Below, piece after piece: positions 25,231 through 34,288 of a DNA stretch of 64,000 nucleotides. The stretch spans positions 1,595-65,594 of the forward strand of contig JAHLWZ010000869.1 of the NCBI GenBank assembly GCA_020536535.1, given 5' to 3'. The notes below the pieces were generated by a model. That model had not been told where the DNA came from. It worked only from the letters and a program-made list of their open reading frames with translations, and made no database searches. How positions within the stretch are numbered: position 1 is the stretch's first letter; the number at the start of each line of letters is the position of its first letter. Made by a program: the position numbers and the translations under genes. Source of the stretch: Pelomyxa schiedti (Eukaryota > Protista > Evosea).

Positions 25231-26430
25231 TCAACAGCAAGTCCTTTTCTTTGGTGGGGGAAAATCATCATCAGCCTCTGCTACAAGGTGGAGGGATGGT
25301 GCCTTGGAGAGGGTGGAATTTGTTAGGAAAGTGTATATTTGGTGGCACAGGTGCGAGAATGCAAGGTCCACATTGATTCCTTCTTTGGAACTGACTTCAC
25401 TGTAAAGCGGTTTAGTGCAAAGTGGTTACTGTGTTGAGGAACACAACAAGAATGAAACTCCGAGTGAATCAGCTAATTTCTGACCTTCCTCTGTAGAGAC
25501 TTCCCTGCGGCCCATCTCACACTGTGAAAGTTCAGTGATAAGAATAAGAAAGAAGGAATCCACCTTGTTTCCAATAAGAATCTTTACAGCGTTATCGCAG
25601 GCATATCTATCGATTTCACCGAGCCAGTGCTTAATATTTATAAATGACGGTTTGTTCGTCACATCACTGGTTGTGGAGGAGATTCTCATTAGCAGCATTA
25701 AAAAAGGAATGACAGAGCACACTATACAATGGCAATGCCATGAGCACCACGGTAATCTGATAGAGTTTCTAGTTCAACAATAGGAGTTTTGTTGTTTTAT
25801 GGAGACTTTACATGAACTCACAATGGTGCGGAATCTAATGAATAGTCTTTAGAAGACAAGAATATGATAAAAACTACTGCATACCTTTCGGAACCAGCTG
25901 TGTCCCACTGCGATAAAAGTTAACCTCATAATTATAGGAAGTGGAATTACTATTTGAAGTCGTATTGTGTGTGTTTCTAGTTGTACAGTTTTTAATTTCT
26001 AAGTGGAATTAACAAGGAAAAAACTATTAGAGTGAACGATAGGTTGGGGTCAGACATAGTCAACACCTATGTTGAAGATCAGCCCAAAAATTCTGCAAAG
26101 TAAATGACACACCAATGGTGCATGCATAATTTGGATCGTATCTATTTTCCTGGAGCTATTGAACAAAAAATAAAAAATGAAATAATACGGACTGTAAAGC
26201 GAAGAATAATGGAGCCTGAACAACCTAAGTAAAAACAGTTGACAAAGATGCTGGAAGTTACTTTTTCCCACGTTAGGGTCACCAATCATCAACAGTTTAT
26301 AGCTCTCCCTAGTGGAATAAACAAAGCGCACCGAAAACACAAATTTCCAGCAACACAGTGATTATTAAGGAAAAAGTTGTTGGACTCGTGCACACAAAAT
26401 AGGCTCATTCACGGGTGGTGTGCCACTCAT
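25231..26430 (-). CDS. Rab1-like small GTPase (divergent)
   Basis: Spliced: [74 protein letters not shown]-stop (CC prenylation motif). Confidence 0.9.
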
Positions 26431-26717
26431 TTCGCTATCTCTTCAAACAACCAATTTGTGAAGTTTGAACTTTTTAAAAAGGAAGTACTGTTACTTCAAG
26501 TGCTCTGACACTCTTACTGGATACACTGCAACTCCCCCTTGCGCAGGACACACGCAAGGTGTCTTCTGCTTAGATCTCAGATGGCTATCCTAGTTGCAGT
26601 TCCAAATCGGGAGAGTTTTCCTCTCGTTGTATAAACGCACTTCAATTCCGTGTTGCAACACAGCAGCTGGTCACTTCCACAGTCGCTCCACTTTAAACAA
26701 GCAAAGAAAACCTAAAC

Positions 26718-29700
26718 ATGCCACTCAAGGCACGCGGACGAGGAGGCAGAGGCCGAGGCCGAGGCGGCCGCGGCTCCGGCTTTCGTGGAGGTAAAGGCGC
26801 CAGGGGCGGCCGAGGAGGGTTCCCCAGCAGCAGCAGAGGGGTAGGCGATCCACAACGAGGGGGGCGCGGCCGAGGCAGCAGAAGGGGAGGCCGAGGCCGC
26901 GGCTGGGGAAGCACCACGGCGCCATACCTGAACGCAGATGCCTCCATGAGCTCCGACGATGATGAAGACGAGGAAGAGGAAGAGGAAGAGGAAGAGGACG
27001 ATGAGGACGAGGTTGTGGAGGTTAAGAAGCCCGCGGGGAAAGGTGCCAACAAGGGAAAGGGAAAAGGAAAGAAGGCGAGCGCCGACGGGGACGACGAGGA
27101 CTCCGGGGAGACGGCGACGGGGAAGAGGGGGCCAAACTGGCCGAGGAAGGGCGAGAAGGCCCAGGGCGAGGACGAGGACGAGACGGGGCCCACGCCCAGG
27201 AAGAAGCCGCGCAAGGCGTCGGCCCCAGCTGCGGTTGCTAAGAAAGTGCCCCCGGCCGAGGAGACTCCAAAGGCAAAGGCCAAGGCCAAGTCCAAGACGG
27301 GGAAGAAGGCCCAACCACCACAAAAGCAACAGCCTGCCGAGAAGAAGGAAAAACCACAAGCTAACGAAAAGCAGAATAAGCAGAAGCAGCAGCAGCAGCA
27401 ACAGTCACCAAAGAGCAAAAAGGGAAAGCCTGCTGAACCTTCTGAGAAGAAAACACCAACTGAAAAGGAAGCCGGAGTGAATGCCAAGGAAGGAGAGAAG
27501 AAAGCAAGCCAAGGAGAACAACCCACAGAGCCTAAGAAGCAAAGCAAGTCAAGTAAAAGAGCTCAAAAAAAGAAGCTGAAAGCGCTCGCAGCCAGTGCTG
27601 CAAGTGAAAAGGATAGTACACCAAAAGAAGCGCTCCCATCCACTGCACAAGTGAAGGACAACGAAATCTCAGAAGCCACTACTCAACCACCAGCAATACC
27701 CCTTGATCCAGTCTTGCCATTACCCGCAGACCACGTGCCAACTACTGCATCTCCTACCGAAAATATAGCACCAACCCCAGTTCCCACTACCGAAACTCCA
27801 TTGTCCACGTCTAACCCTCTATCTGAGTCCTCATCTAAAGCCACCTCTGAGCCAGCATCTACTACAGAGGCTACCCTTAAACCAGCGTCTGTGGCCCCAC
27901 CGATTGGAGTCTCCTCAATTTGTACCGTCCCTTTGGAACACCATGATGCCTATACAGGGAAAATTCTAAAGATCGACCTTACTGCTGTATGCCTATGAAA
28001 ATTTGTTTCTCTTGGAAACTGCTTACTAGGGAACTTGCATTGAAGAACCAACCTCTGCAGAGATGAAGCGCAAATGGGTTGGCGCAAGAGGCTTTGGCAC
28101 CAAGTGAGTCGATATACCTTTTATTTTCTTTTTCCCCTATGATATCGTTACATTAAGTGTAGGATTATCAGTGATTTAGTTGATCCCAAAATCGATCCTC
28201 TATCCCCTGCAAATGTCTTAGTTTGCGCTACGGGGCCTCTAACAGCAATTGGAATTTCTACTGGTTGTTTCACTTGGAATTCGCGCCACCACACTAATTT
28301 CCAATACACAGGAGCACGATGTACATTCGTGGCAAAAGGTGCCCTTACCAACACACTTTCCACTGCCAGTGTTGGCGGTAACTTCGGGATTTCACTCAAA
28401 CGAAGTGGGTATGATGCCATTGTTTTCACTGGCAAGTCTCCCGCACCAATCAATCTTGTTTTACGGGTTGGCACTCCGCTTCGTTAGCCGAGACTAACCT
28501 TAGAAAGGCGGGAGAGAGGCCCATTCTTGCTGATGCTTCCTCTCTTTGGGGTTCTGTTACATCTGCGACGTTTGAGGCCTTACACACCCAGTACAAACCT
28601 CTTAGCGTTGCTTGTATTGGCCCAGCAGGAGAAAAACTCAGGTATTTCAGTTGGAAAATAGTAACTGTGACTTAGTTGCTATGTAGTAAAATTGCTTGTA
28701 TAATGTCAGACAAAAAGCACGCAGCAGGGCGTGGAGGCCTTGGTGCTGTGATGGGATCAAAGAATGTGAAAGCAATCATTTGTTGTGGTGGTTCAGTAGT
28801 AAAACCACATGACGAAACACTCCTGCGAGAGGCATCGTCTGCATCTCATTTATGGTCCTTTCTAATGGCTTGTAAGGTGCATAAAGAAAAATGCAAAAAA
28901 ATGGTTGCAAACGGCGTTGTTGGGTTACTTACTAAGCATGGCACAAATGTCCTTATGAAAGGATGTAATGATGCAGGAATACTACCATCCCTGAACTTCA
29001 AGAGTGGTCATACTGATGCAACCACATGCGAACCAGTGTGTAATCAGGTTTTTTCCCTTCATTCTCACCTATGTGGCATATAGGCAACAGGAGAATATGT
29101 TACTGAGCATTATCTAAAAAAGAATGAAGGGTGCAATAACTGTCTTATTAGATGTGGCCGAGTTGTAGAAATAGAGGGGAAAACACTCTACGGTCCGGAG
29201 TATGGTAAAGCAATGTCTTTCCTTTCACCTTTGCTCACCTCCCTTAGAATCTGCCTGGGCCTTTGGTCCCAACTGTGAGTTTTTTTTTTTATATGCTCAT
29301 GAAATATTCTAAACATGAAAGGTGGAATATTCGATTTTGCTGCTATAACAAAAGCCAACGCTATATGCAATGAATATGGCATTGATACAATCAGCGCCGG
29401 TGGCACAATTTCCTGTGCAATGGAGATGCACGAGAAGGGCTACCTCTCGGAACCAATTAAATTTGGCGTAAGTTTGTTTTGACCATTTGAAAAGTTCTAA
29501 CCACGAAAATCAGAGTGCTGAAGCACTTGTCTCTTATATAGAGAAGATGGGCAAATTGGAACCAGGAATTGGAGAAGAACTTTCTGAAGGATCACTTCGG
29601 TTCTCCACAAAATATGGACACTCAGAATTTTCAATGACTGGTGAATTTTTTTGGTTATTTGCCACATCTTAACTCTTCCACCAGTGAAGGGGCAAGAGCT

Positions 29701-30419
29701 TCCTGCCTATGATCCACGAGGTCTTCAGGGAATGGGTATAGTGTTCCAACAGTAGTTTTGGTTACTTAAAGTGAATAGGATTGAACTACTCGACCTCAGT
29801 ACGTGGGGGATGCCATGTATACGGCTATACCACAGCCGTCGGTAAGAGCCAAAAGTATTTTGTGAAAATAACATGTTAAAGAGCATGTTGGCAACCCCAT
29901 AAAACTGGACCCAAAGGCTACAGATAGCAACAAGGTTGCAACTGTCATTGCATTCCAGAATACTGCAGCATTCATAGATGCTGTAGGAATGTGCTTGTTC
30001 TCGTCGTTCGCGTTGACTGCCGATGATTACACAGACTTGTTTTGTGCCGCAACTGGTTTGACTGGGATAGACAAGAGCACTTTTGGTGTAGAAGTTGGGG
30101 AAAGGTACAAACCAACACCTTTTGCGAATGGCGATTTACTTCTTCCAGAATATGGAATGCACAGAAACTGTTCAATGAAGCCGCAGGCTTCTCCTCCAAG
30201 GATGACACCCTCCCGACCCGTTTACTTAACCAGCCACTCGATTTCGGTGACCTTCAGGTTGCTTTCTCTCGGTCCAGTCCTGCCAGAAAGTCCTAACACC
30301 AACCAAAGGGCCAAACTTGGAAACGCGAAGAACTGCTGGGTCAGTACTACGCCCAGAGAGGCTGGGATGCCAACGGGAAGCCCACTCCTGAAAAACTCAC
30401 TGCACTGGGCTTGCTCTAA
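26718..30419 (+). CDS. Aldehyde:ferredoxin oxidoreductase (W/Mo-pterin AOR family) with ~410-aa low-complexity N-terminal extension
   Basis: [119 protein letters not shown]...LGLL-stop. More than ten GT-AG introns. Confidence 0.92.
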
Positions 30420-30849
30420 GCGAGTCCTACCACTACGGGGCCTTCCCTGTTCAGACAAATTTCCTTTAGTCTAAAACCTTTTTTTGGCTGGGGGTGAAGT
30501 TTTCCCGGCGTCCAAAATAATTAAGAAAAAGCATGCAATTCCGCGTACCACCAATTTCATCGCCCTTTTATGACAGTTGCACCTCTTTGCATATTTTCTC
30601 GTTGTGAAATAGGATTGACCTTTATCAGTACCATTTTTGATTGTGATATCCCACACGACTAACAACCTTCTCCCAGAACACCGAAGGAAAACCGTTTTTT
30701 TTTTGTTTTGCTGCTGGGCTTCGTTGGTGTCCCGGTGGGGATTTCGCTGTGTGTTGCATCTTTTTAAAATTTTTTTTGGTGGGCTAATTCGTTCGTTCTT
30801 TAAAACTGTTGTTGTTTGTGTAGGAGTAGTGTTTAGAGGAAGGAACATT

Positions 30850-32690
30850 AAGTCAAAATGCTGGAATGTAGTGTTGTTGTTGTTGGCAGGAACGAGTGTG
30901 GACGGGCCATTGAGACTAGAATATTGCAGTCGTTCTCTACAGTGGTAATATCCTTTTGCTAATGTACTGTTACTTTTTGCCCAGAAAATAGTTGTAACAT
31001 ACCTTATAATAAAAAGGCACCTCTTAGGGAGTTGCTTGATACAGCAGTGGCTGCAGTGGGGGAGAATAGTCAATATTTGAGGGTTTGGGCAGTTCTGAAA
31101 GGAAGAATAATCCGAGATCAATCTGCTCCATTAAGTTCTCTTCTTAATCTATTAGGTACCTACTACACAGATAAATGCGTTTACTGTATCCCTTCGTTAT
31201 ACTTATAAACAAACCATCACGCAGGCTCCCCTCCCGTTCTCCACGTTTGCTTTTCCCCTCGAAAAATTACTGCCCCACTCAAGCAAATAACAATGGGAAC
31301 ACTATTTTGCACTCCGCACCCTGTTTCAGAGAGTTCTGAAGTAAAAAATACCTCCACTCCTCAACCTCTTTTAACAATAGAAAGATTTGTTCAAATGCGG
31401 TGACAGCACTATCGCAATCCACAGAACAGCCTTGGGTTCCATGTGACTGGATAAAAGTGAGAATATTTTTCGTTTGGTGTGTTATTAAGGTCCACCCTGA
31501 CAGGGACTGCAAAAGCTAGAGTCCATTCTGCAGGTGACTACACCGACAGAAAGTAGTGAAACGATGAAGCTTGGTAAAGCCTTCTCTCATGCCCTCTAAG
31601 TGCCAACTACTTCTAGCAAATATTATCTCCCATGCCTGTTTATCGCTCTCAGACTTGCAACTCCAGTTACGAGGTTTACTGATCTCTGAATCTGAACTTG
31701 ACAATCATTGGTAGGAACACAATACAACTTGAAATTTGCTTAAAATCTTAGTGTAACCAACGTGGGACCTAAGGCTATAGAGGAATGCCAAAAAATGGCA
31801 TCAACCCTAACAGTAATGGCTGCAACTTTGTCAAGCTTCAGTGGTTTAAACCAACACTCTGACACACATCTCTTTACCTCCAGCATTGGTCTCCTCTCCG
31901 TTCAATCAACCCGTGAACCAATGCTCAAAAAACCCACTCGGCTTCAACTTGCATTCATGCTGGGTACAGTTGAGAGACCTCTTCCTGCACATAACCACGG
32001 ACTTGTATGCCTTTCCTGATATGACTGGGATACCGTTTTCCCTTCACCTTTTGTTCCTTACATCGAAATAGGACCAACTGAACAACCACGATCATACCTG
32101 TTTTATTTATGACGCCCACCATGTGGCACTGTGCCTCATCCTCCAGATGATTCTCACGGCATTTCAAGCCGGTGGAGCTTTTCTAGGGATTATTAACAAA
32201 CAATGCATTCAAGATACTCGCAAAGCACTTAGTAATCTGGGAATGGCTCCGGACCAACTACTAGAATCCAAGCGAATTGCATTCGTTGACAACGATGCCT
32301 ACCTAGAAGTACCTAAGCCACTTTTGCGATTAATATAGAATGACAGAGTTATGACTATTATTACGCTCAAACTAATACCAACCAAAGGAAAAACCTTCTG
32401 CACAAACACGGGAACTCGGTGTGAGAGATTTGCTTCAGAACACTTTGACATCATCTGGACTGGACAACTTATATGTTGTTGGTGATGTCAGATATCCTGG
32501 TGATCAGCCACAGCCCGCACAGGACTTTTTTAGCAACCAAATTCTGGAATATGAGAAGATAATAACACCAGGGACGTATACACTGCTTTCCGCAAGAGGG
32601 ATATGTTTATATGAGAGGACTGCATTCCCTCCCCCATTCCTTGATAGCCTTGTTGCCACTCATAGATTTGAGCTCACTGCACACTCATAG
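30850..32690 (+). CDS. Multi-exon protein with C-terminal MEDS sensory domain; N-terminal part possibly ubiquitin-like
   Basis: Exons 32072-32690 give HDHTCFIYD...RKALSNLGMAPDQLLESKRIAFVDNDAYL...LYVVGDV...ILEYEKII...GICLYERTAFPPPFLDSLVATH, matching the MEDS pattern from memory. Start codon not located. Confidence 0.65.
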
Positions 32691-32862
32691 GAGAAAAAGG
32701 GATAATATGCAATTTTGTTGTTTGTTCCCTTTTTTTTCATTTGGGAGTTTTCTTCATGGGGTTTGTTGTGGTGGTGCTTGTTTCTTTCGTCTTTGAGGGC
32801 GCCCGTTGGGCTTGCGAGAACTTTTGGCGGCACTCGGTAGTTGGCGTAACACCTAAAGAAGC

Positions 32863-34177
32863 TCAGTTCATATTATGCAAGGAAAATTTCTCAACATGTT
32901 CTGCCCTCTTGGGCTCCTGGAATATACAAACGACTGCAACAATGCACCCTGGGATCGTGATTATGTACTTGCGCCAGCCGTCCTGTGAAGTGGTAAGAGC
33001 ACGACTAGAAAATGGAAGCTGATACCCGCTTTTGGTATCCTTTTTCCGTGGCACCCTTGGTACTGTCCTTCTTGTTCTTCTTTCCACAGTTTGGCCAGAG
33101 GTCGTTATTTGGTCCAATGCAGAAGAAGGGTCGATTCTTAAGGAGATCCAACTCTGAAGTGACAGTGAGGAGTAACAAAGGGGAGGATATGTTACGATTA
33201 ATCCAGTAATGTGTGGGGTCGTCCTTATAAATCCATTTGTCAGAGATAATGACTGGTCACAAAAGAAAAGAAATGAAATGAAATGCAAACTGGGTGAAAA
33301 ATTAAAAAGCGCAGACGGGACTTACATTTATCAATTGTGTCTACAAGTACTGTGGGCAATTTGTACACTTCATCCCGAGTCAAATGAAGTGGGCCACAGT
33401 CATTAAACTTCTCACACTGGAAGTCGCGACGGCTATATGTTGCTAGTGGAATGCGGTTTTCACACTGGAAGGCACAAAGTGCAGGAGACTTCTGAGAGCA
33501 AGCGAGAGCCTGCACTATACTTCGTTGTATGGGTTGGTCTAACAACAGTAGCTTCTGCCAAAGGAAGGCCTGAGTTTGACAAAGCTGTGTGATCTGGTCG
33601 CCGCCCTCCAGTCCCGGAGCAAGGGGCACTGCATTTGGCTGAGGCACAAAAGAACCGACTCGGTCATTAACTTGCTCCGCCTGCCAAAGCTGTGGGATCG
33701 GTAGCGGCGGTGGTCGTGGAAAGGGTGATCCATATGCCACTCCCGTAGATACTGCATTTTGTTATAAATGGCAATAAAAGCTATCAAGTCAAAATTACCA
33801 GGCAGTTGCAGCAGCGGCTGCTGTTGCTGTTGCTGGGGGACGCAGTTACGTTGTGCCTGGTCACCACCGACGCCAGGTGTTTGTTGACTCGGCTGCATGC
33901 CATCAGTGTACTGTTGTGGCCGTTGCTGTATGTGAGCACCAACGGAAGCACCAGTATGCTGAGGTGAGGATGCAGCAGAGTTAACAGACAGCTGGGGTCG
34001 GTGGGGATCAGCCACCGCGGAACTGCTGTTGCTGTGTTGGCTGTAGGGGTTGGTGGGGCCATTTCCCATAATCCAGGAGGCAGTGGCTCCAGTAGGCGAC
34101 AGCATGGGCTCAAGGTGGGTGTTGCTTTTCTCAAGTTCGTCGTCGTCTTCCCCACCTGCCGCTGATTGTTGGTTCAT
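32863..34177 (-). CDS. Hypothetical protein with Gln/Ser-rich N-terminus
   Basis: ORFs 33539-34270, 33240-33740 and 32863-33288 are linkable by introns; no family recognised. Confidence 0.5.
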
Positions 34178-34288
34178 GTTTGGGGAATTTTTTTTTTGTT
34201 CAATTGAACAAGTAATTGAATAAAAATACCGTTTGGGGTTTTCTTTTGCAATTGCCATTGCCGCACCCAAGTTGGGAAGCGAAGGGGT

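Follow-up and report, generated by a model that had tools for sequence, protein, structure and literature searches.

Pelo_13107 belongs to an old, previously undescribed family of amoebal genes in which a ubiquitin-like (Ubl) domain is joined to a MEDS domain, an input module that the literature on MEDS/PF14417 describes in bacteria and archaea only. It lies in a stretch of 64,000 nucleotides of Pelomyxa schiedti DNA at 1595-65594 of contig C869, here called the window. We find it to be a nuclear gene of nine exons that encodes a soluble, three-part protein of 456 residues: a Ubl domain (residues ~1-90), a helical region (~110-225), and the MEDS domain (278-456). The product is deposited as KAH3745498.1, “hypothetical protein” of Pelomyxa schiedti. 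An earlier note on this DNA had suggested that a prokaryote-type sensor may be wired to a eukaryotic output at this locus, and such putative wiring is plausible for Pelo_13107.

The deposited protein maps exactly onto the plus strand of the window as nine exons with a total of 1371 bases and an intact reading frame (Table 1). The eight introns are 72, 69, 44, 47, 43, 41, 67, and 79 nt long and all have GT-AG ends, with exons 8 and 9 joined in phase 0 across the 79-nt intron. This bears out the spliced, eukaryotic setting described in the earlier note, and the two MEDS exons that it delimited coincide to the base with exons 8 and 9 and their AG/GT flanks. Its account of the upstream exons was correct in part: the peptide it quoted is that of exon 2, but four short exons ahead of the MEDS exons had been overlooked. 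A five-exon model of 329 amino acids, which treats 31156-31780 as one 625-nt intron, is ruled out by the deposited protein, which has four further short exons within that span. These exons are conserved in the paralogues and in mRNA assemblies of Mastigella. The introns on either side of exon 4 fall at positions common to paralogues P0001 and P0002, the exon 6 motif is kept in Mastigella transcripts, and exon 7 matches the paralogues with a tblastn E-value of 1e-7. Transcript data entered the deposited P. schiedti gene models, which were built with Augustus, PASA, and EVM. No record of the exact Pelo_13107 product was found in transcript-derived assemblies, and Rfam gave no match over positions 30400-32900.

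Table 1. Exons of Pelo_13107 in the window and the parts of the protein that they encode.
Feature	Position	Strand	Residues	Content	Boundaries
Exon 1	30858..30944	+	1-29	First two Ubl strands (model: 2-11, 17-26)	Start ATG; GT donor
Exon 2	31017..31155	+	30-76, last codon split	Ubl helix and strands 3-4	AG/GT flanks
Exon 3	31225..31340	+	76-114	Final Ubl strand, then linker	AG/GT flanks
Exon 4	31385..31456	+	115-138	Family-specific helical region begins	AG/GT flanks
Exon 5	31504..31573	+	139-162, last codon split	Helical region	Refined to GT/AG; intron position shared with paralogues
Exon 6	31617..31710	+	162-193, both end codons split	First long helix of predicted hairpin	
Exon 7	31752..32004	+	193-277	Second long helix (191-223), then low-confidence linker to MEDS	AG/GT flanks
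Exon 8	32072..32308	+	278-356	N-terminal MEDS half; H-x-C motif on strand 1	
Exon 9	32388..32690	+	357-456	C-terminal MEDS half; Y411-E412, C429, H448	TAG stop

Pelo_13107 was retrieved with a profile of last-exon equivalents from seven paralogues, searched against 1.84 billion representative proteins, and all full-length analyses used the deposited 456-residue protein rather than exons that we had joined ourselves. The complete protein matches the Pfam MEDS model (PF14417) with 51.1 bits and an E-value of 1.8e-13, residues 284-449 aligning to profile positions 1-161, against a curated cut-off of 29.8 bits. Each MEDS exon taken alone stays below that cut-off, exon 8 covering profile positions 1-71 (E 1.5e-5, 25.4 bits) and the coding part of exon 9 (32388-32687) covering positions 87-161 (E 2.7e-5, 24.5 bits). 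All motifs on which the earlier note had based its assignment occur in the translations of the two exons: HTCFIY, LSNLGMAPDQL, VVGDV, LEYE, and CLYERTAFPPPFLDSLVATH. In an alignment of 34 sequences, 17 amoebal and 17 prokaryote-type, E412, C429, and H448 never vary, and conservation is 90% or higher at H285, G380, and Y411. Pfam finds no domain besides MEDS in Pelo_13107, and in particular no prokaryotic signaling output such as a histidine kinase, helix-turn-helix, or receiver domain. A word search with exon 9 alone returned no relatives, because only proteins of 55-177 amino acids were candidates.

Galperin et al. 2018 list MEDS as “iKaiC” (PMC5847659), and the predicted structure of Pelo_13107 agrees with that placement. 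AlphaFold2, run with the family alignment, models residues 280-456 with a pLDDT of about 95. Foldseek relates this model to the KaiC CI and CII domains and to FlaH, with E-values of 6e-5 or weaker. In VIA-align, KaiC ranks at the top (Z 13.7, rmsd 3.1 over 166 residues), followed by SSO2452, FlaH, and PH0284, and the inactive RecA-like subunits Elp4/5/6 and Psy3-Csm2 are also among the structure matches (Z 9.4-11.5). The MEDS sequence profile likewise matches KaiC with an E-value of 4e-5, and the match begins just past each of the two P-loops. Pelo_13107 lacks the Walker A pattern [AG]xxxxGK[ST], as do 13 of 14 relatives that were checked; the sole pattern match, in paralogue P0001, lies off the P-loop position. 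The model thus shows the Pelo_13107 MEDS domain as an inactivated KaiC/RecA-like fold that has lost the Walker A loop and kept the His, Tyr-Glu, Cys, and His of the signature. The membership in MEDS claimed by the earlier note is therefore upheld by the profile score, by the signature residues, and by the P-loop-less fold together. Our search of the PDB found neither a solved MEDS structure nor a MEDS ligand complex.

Among the hits with a readable source, a minority of the 112, the only named eukaryotes with a true MEDS match are two archamoebae. This agrees with the literature, which treats the domain as prokaryotic, and with the rarity in eukaryotes that the earlier note had assumed. Hits in Penicillium (P0016) and a moth (P0019) were rejected as false because the full-domain profile misses them and they are repeat matches in multiple stretches. 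The prokaryote-type hits and the amoebal family also differ in architecture: in the former, MEDS begins between residues 10 and 40, with kinase or other output domains behind it, whereas in the latter it is C-terminal in all members.

The P. schiedti assembly that we searched comprises 52,367,397 bases on 5337 contigs (published as 52.4 Mb and 5337 scaffolds: PMC8887013) and contains at least seven MEDS loci, each in two pieces. Two further weak matches on contig C458 were rejected as dual-specificity phosphatases (312-959 and 3239-3586 of L015, both on the minus strand), which resemble MEDS profile positions 11-60 weakly; weak half-domain matches in this genome therefore need care. In six deposited paralogues, introns recur where Pelo_13107 has them, at alignment columns 143/144, 167/168, 194/195, 371/372, and ~456. 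The intron at 371/372 marks the N-terminal edge of MEDS in five of the six, and the one at ~456 lies inside the domain. The models of Pelo_9288 (P0002) and P0003 appear to be truncated at the N-terminus, with Ubl exon sequence found upstream of their annotated starts (L014:3265-3390, plus strand, and L012:4575-4625, minus strand, respectively).

Relatives are also found beyond P. schiedti. Mastigella eilhardi (EukProt) has nine transcript clusters of relatives, and ERZ21831265 at ENA, a eukaryote-like long-read assembly, holds at least eight relative ORF fragments and one full domain. Contigs of this assembly (run ERR12015700; L016, L018, and L020) reach 497 kb and carry eukaryote-like genes with short introns (Copine, NYN, RIIa) as well as several members of the MEDS family, one of which encodes MEDS in a single ORF without interruption.

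We built a maximum-likelihood tree of 86 domains, in which one branch (ultrafast bootstrap 95, SH-aLRT 83) separates the 16 amoebal rows from all others, and the closest non-amoebal row sits on a long branch. The tree omits the near-identical isoforms P0113-P0116, P0015, and P0031, for which the longer cluster member was kept, as well as fragments covering fewer than 150 profile positions. Pelo_9288 is the sister of Pelo_13107 (99/96). Within the Pelomyxa paralogues lies a Pelomyxa-Mastigella pair (100/94), and this indicates that duplications in the family predate the split of the two genera.

The upstream exons had also been called ubiquitin-like in the earlier note, and several comparisons agree on this, although no match to the Pfam ubiquitin model was found in Pelo_13107. 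We used hhalign to compare an alignment of four N-termini of the family with a profile of 18 diverse ubiquitin-like domains from the same genome; this gave a probability of 91.4 and an E-value of 8.8e-7, placing residues 16-87 of Pelo_13107 on positions 8-68 of the Ubl profile. All controls (a reversed alignment, 20 column shuffles, the helical region, and the MEDS region) reached 0.8 or less. The same family alignment set against one ubiquitin sequence gave no signal, which indicates that a diverse ubiquitin-like profile is needed. The Pfam ubiquitin model matches paralogue P0001 weakly (16 bits, with a cut-off of 25.4 bits), and exons 1, 2, and 7 and the paralogue pieces, taken singly, have no Pfam match because they are too short. 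DSSP assigns the order E-E-H-E-E to residues 1-61 of the model, or beta-beta-alpha-beta-beta, at a modest pLDDT of 47-72. In a VIA-align comparison with 48,161 chains, the matches span residues 1-85 and 1-89 and include kindlin F0 domains (Z 9.2 and 9.1) as well as a UBX domain (Z 9.1, with an rmsd of 1.6 over 70 residues). A language-model search with residues 1-105 provides a further lead, its ten best named neighbors all being ubiquitin-like with scores of 0.82-0.88. The domain lacks a C-terminal Gly-Gly and is internal, continuing into GSPPVLH, so it is an integral domain of Pelo_13107 rather than a modifier. The evidence supports a divergent ubiquitin-like beta-grasp at residues ~1-90. 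Across the P. schiedti genome the ubiquitin profile matches at more than 150 places, and long head-to-tail polyubiquitin arrays account for many of these; the contigs concerned include C711 (61483-63291), C202, C106, C830, and C166.

Residues 112-223, between the two domains, are predicted to be helical, with a long hairpin at 157-223 (pLDDT 64-93, mostly above 85) whose helix at 157-184 reaches a pLDDT of about 90. Neither Pfam nor a language-model search with residues 105-232 gave a known match or usable neighbor for this region, and a word search with residues 1-232 returned Pelo_13107 itself only. The arrangement of the three parts in the full model is uncertain (pTM 0.47).

The best explanation of these results as a whole is that Pelo_13107 is a Ubl-MEDS gene with a MEDS domain of prokaryotic origin and a product that works as a cytosolic sensor-adaptor, an account that we propose tentatively and rate at somewhat less than an even chance. 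The tree and the common intron positions suggest that one prokaryotic MEDS domain was acquired by an ancestor of the pelomyxid archamoebae; this domain would then have been fused behind a Ubl domain, gained introns, and duplicated many times before Pelomyxa and Mastigella split. The alignment with KaiC suggests that the conserved residues line one predicted pocket, and this His/Cys/Glu pocket at the KaiC nucleotide site may register a small ligand, a metal, or a redox state. The helical hairpin could transmit or gate the state of the MEDS domain, and the Ubl domain could dock the protein on a Ubl receptor, for instance the proteasome or p97. In this way, an input module from prokaryotes would feed a eukaryotic protein-interaction output that stands in for the histidine kinase or DNA-binding domain. 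An unlikely extension of this account would make these proteins archamoebal “one-component” sensors, in which MEDS responds to a small metabolite or a redox cue of anaerobic life, perhaps an aldehyde since an AOR gene lies nearby, and passes this signal through the Ubl domain directly to the proteasome or p97. If that were true, the output would be protein turnover and not transcription or phosphorylation.

The main rival to a sensor-adaptor is that the MEDS domain is a ligand-free pseudo-ATPase scaffold which oligomerizes or binds a protein partner, the Ubl domain merely recruiting the assembly. A KaiC/RecA-like fold without a P-loop would suit such a role, as would the presence of the inactive RecA-like subunits among its structure matches, and the PDB, as searched here, is without a MEDS ligand complex. 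However, the residues that prokaryote-type and amoebal sequences have in common without exception (His, Cys, Glu, His) are polar and reactive, a pattern expected at a site for a ligand or metal more than at an interface, and prokaryotic MEDS domains sit at the input end of kinases and regulators; we consider the scaffold a serious but somewhat less probable reading. Far less can be said for the idea that the locus is prokaryotic contamination from a symbiont, or a wrongly annotated or decaying relic without a functional product. P. schiedti does carry methanogen and bacterial endosymbionts, and the record of transcript-derived assemblies, in which the exact product is missing, would fit a relic. 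Nevertheless, the eight canonical introns, the frame intact over all nine exons, the agreement of intron positions with five paralogues from other contigs, the eukaryote-type Ubl domain in the same reading frame, the homologues in Mastigella mRNA assemblies, and the retention of all signature residues make this explanation highly improbable.

A functional link to the neighboring gene also has to be weighed against the sensor-adaptor account. An intron-rich gene for aldehyde:ferredoxin oxidoreductase (AOR) occupies 26718-30419 on the same strand and ends 440 bases upstream of the start of Pelo_13107, which could then work with this enzyme, its MEDS domain sensing aldehydes or related small carbon compounds and controlling the level or activity of AOR. 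MEDS is indeed predicted to sense simple hydrocarbon derivatives (PMC5847659 among others), a ligand class that is a prediction only even in prokaryotes, where the literature gives genetic links only. We estimate the chance of an AOR-MEDS adjacency at about 0.3%, a post-hoc figure based on four AOR loci, seven MEDS loci, and roughly 19,900 genes. However, the adjacency was spotted after the fact, and it is confined to one of the four AOR loci in the genome (C869, C850, C663, and C1350): the contigs of the last three carry no MEDS locus, and no AOR gene is found near any of the remaining six MEDS loci. The AOR-adjoining copy is also nested inside the family tree and is not its founder. The link is thus possible but weak, and we regard it as quite improbable. 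On C663, the AOR locus and a guanylate/adenylate cyclase domain are about 500 bases apart (26384-26845, plus strand, and 27379-28730, minus strand). No cyclase-domain match was found close to any of the seven MEDS loci. Downstream of Pelo_13107, the minus strand of the window has long open frames rich in Gln and Pro (32863-34270).

Whichever role the protein has, a domain that the literature confines to prokaryotes is here fixed in a eukaryote, cut by old introns, and expanded to at least seven copies in Pelomyxa and nine transcript clusters in Mastigella, with a Ubl partner in place of the kinase or DNA-binding domain. If the sensor-adaptor account holds, the family would show clearly how a sensor module from prokaryotes can be rewired to serve eukaryotic protein interactions. 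It contributes to our view of how gene transfer has shaped anaerobic amoebae living with methanogens. As small soluble proteins, its members are also suited to asking what MEDS binds, a long-open question.

Compared with the known systems, Pelo_13107 is closest to its own paralogues (Pelo_8467, Pelo_9288, and others) and to the Mastigella transcripts, which share its three-part architecture and intron positions. It is 28-40% identical to these relatives and differs from them as the sole copy that adjoins an AOR gene. Prokaryotic MEDS proteins of PF14417, such as DcmR-type regulators and the EtnR2-type and methanogen histidine kinases, share with Pelo_13107 the His, Tyr-Glu, Cys, and His signature and a KaiC-like fold that lacks a P-loop, with 10-25% identity between Pelo_13107 and the prokaryote-type alignment rows. 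Unlike them, Pelo_13107 is eukaryotic, lacks a kinase or DNA-binding domain, and carries MEDS at its C-terminal end, behind the Ubl domain and helical region and with a phase-0 intron inside.

The resemblance to RecA-superfamily ATPases of the KaiC, FlaH, and SSO2452 type is one of fold (Z 13.0-13.7 over 160-167 aligned residues), the similarity in sequence being weak at the profile E-value given above. Since the Walker A loop is missing and identity to those chains is only 6-11%, ATP binding or hydrolysis in the manner of KaiC is not expected of the Pelo_13107 MEDS domain. At the other end of the protein, the Ubl domain has counterparts in Rad23/Dsk2-type shuttles, UBX proteins, and kindlin F0, which likewise have an uncleaved beta-grasp without a Gly-Gly end. 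In contrast to these proteins, Pelo_13107 has no UBA, UBX-signature, or FERM context, and the partner of its N-terminal beta-grasp is instead a prokaryote-type MEDS domain.
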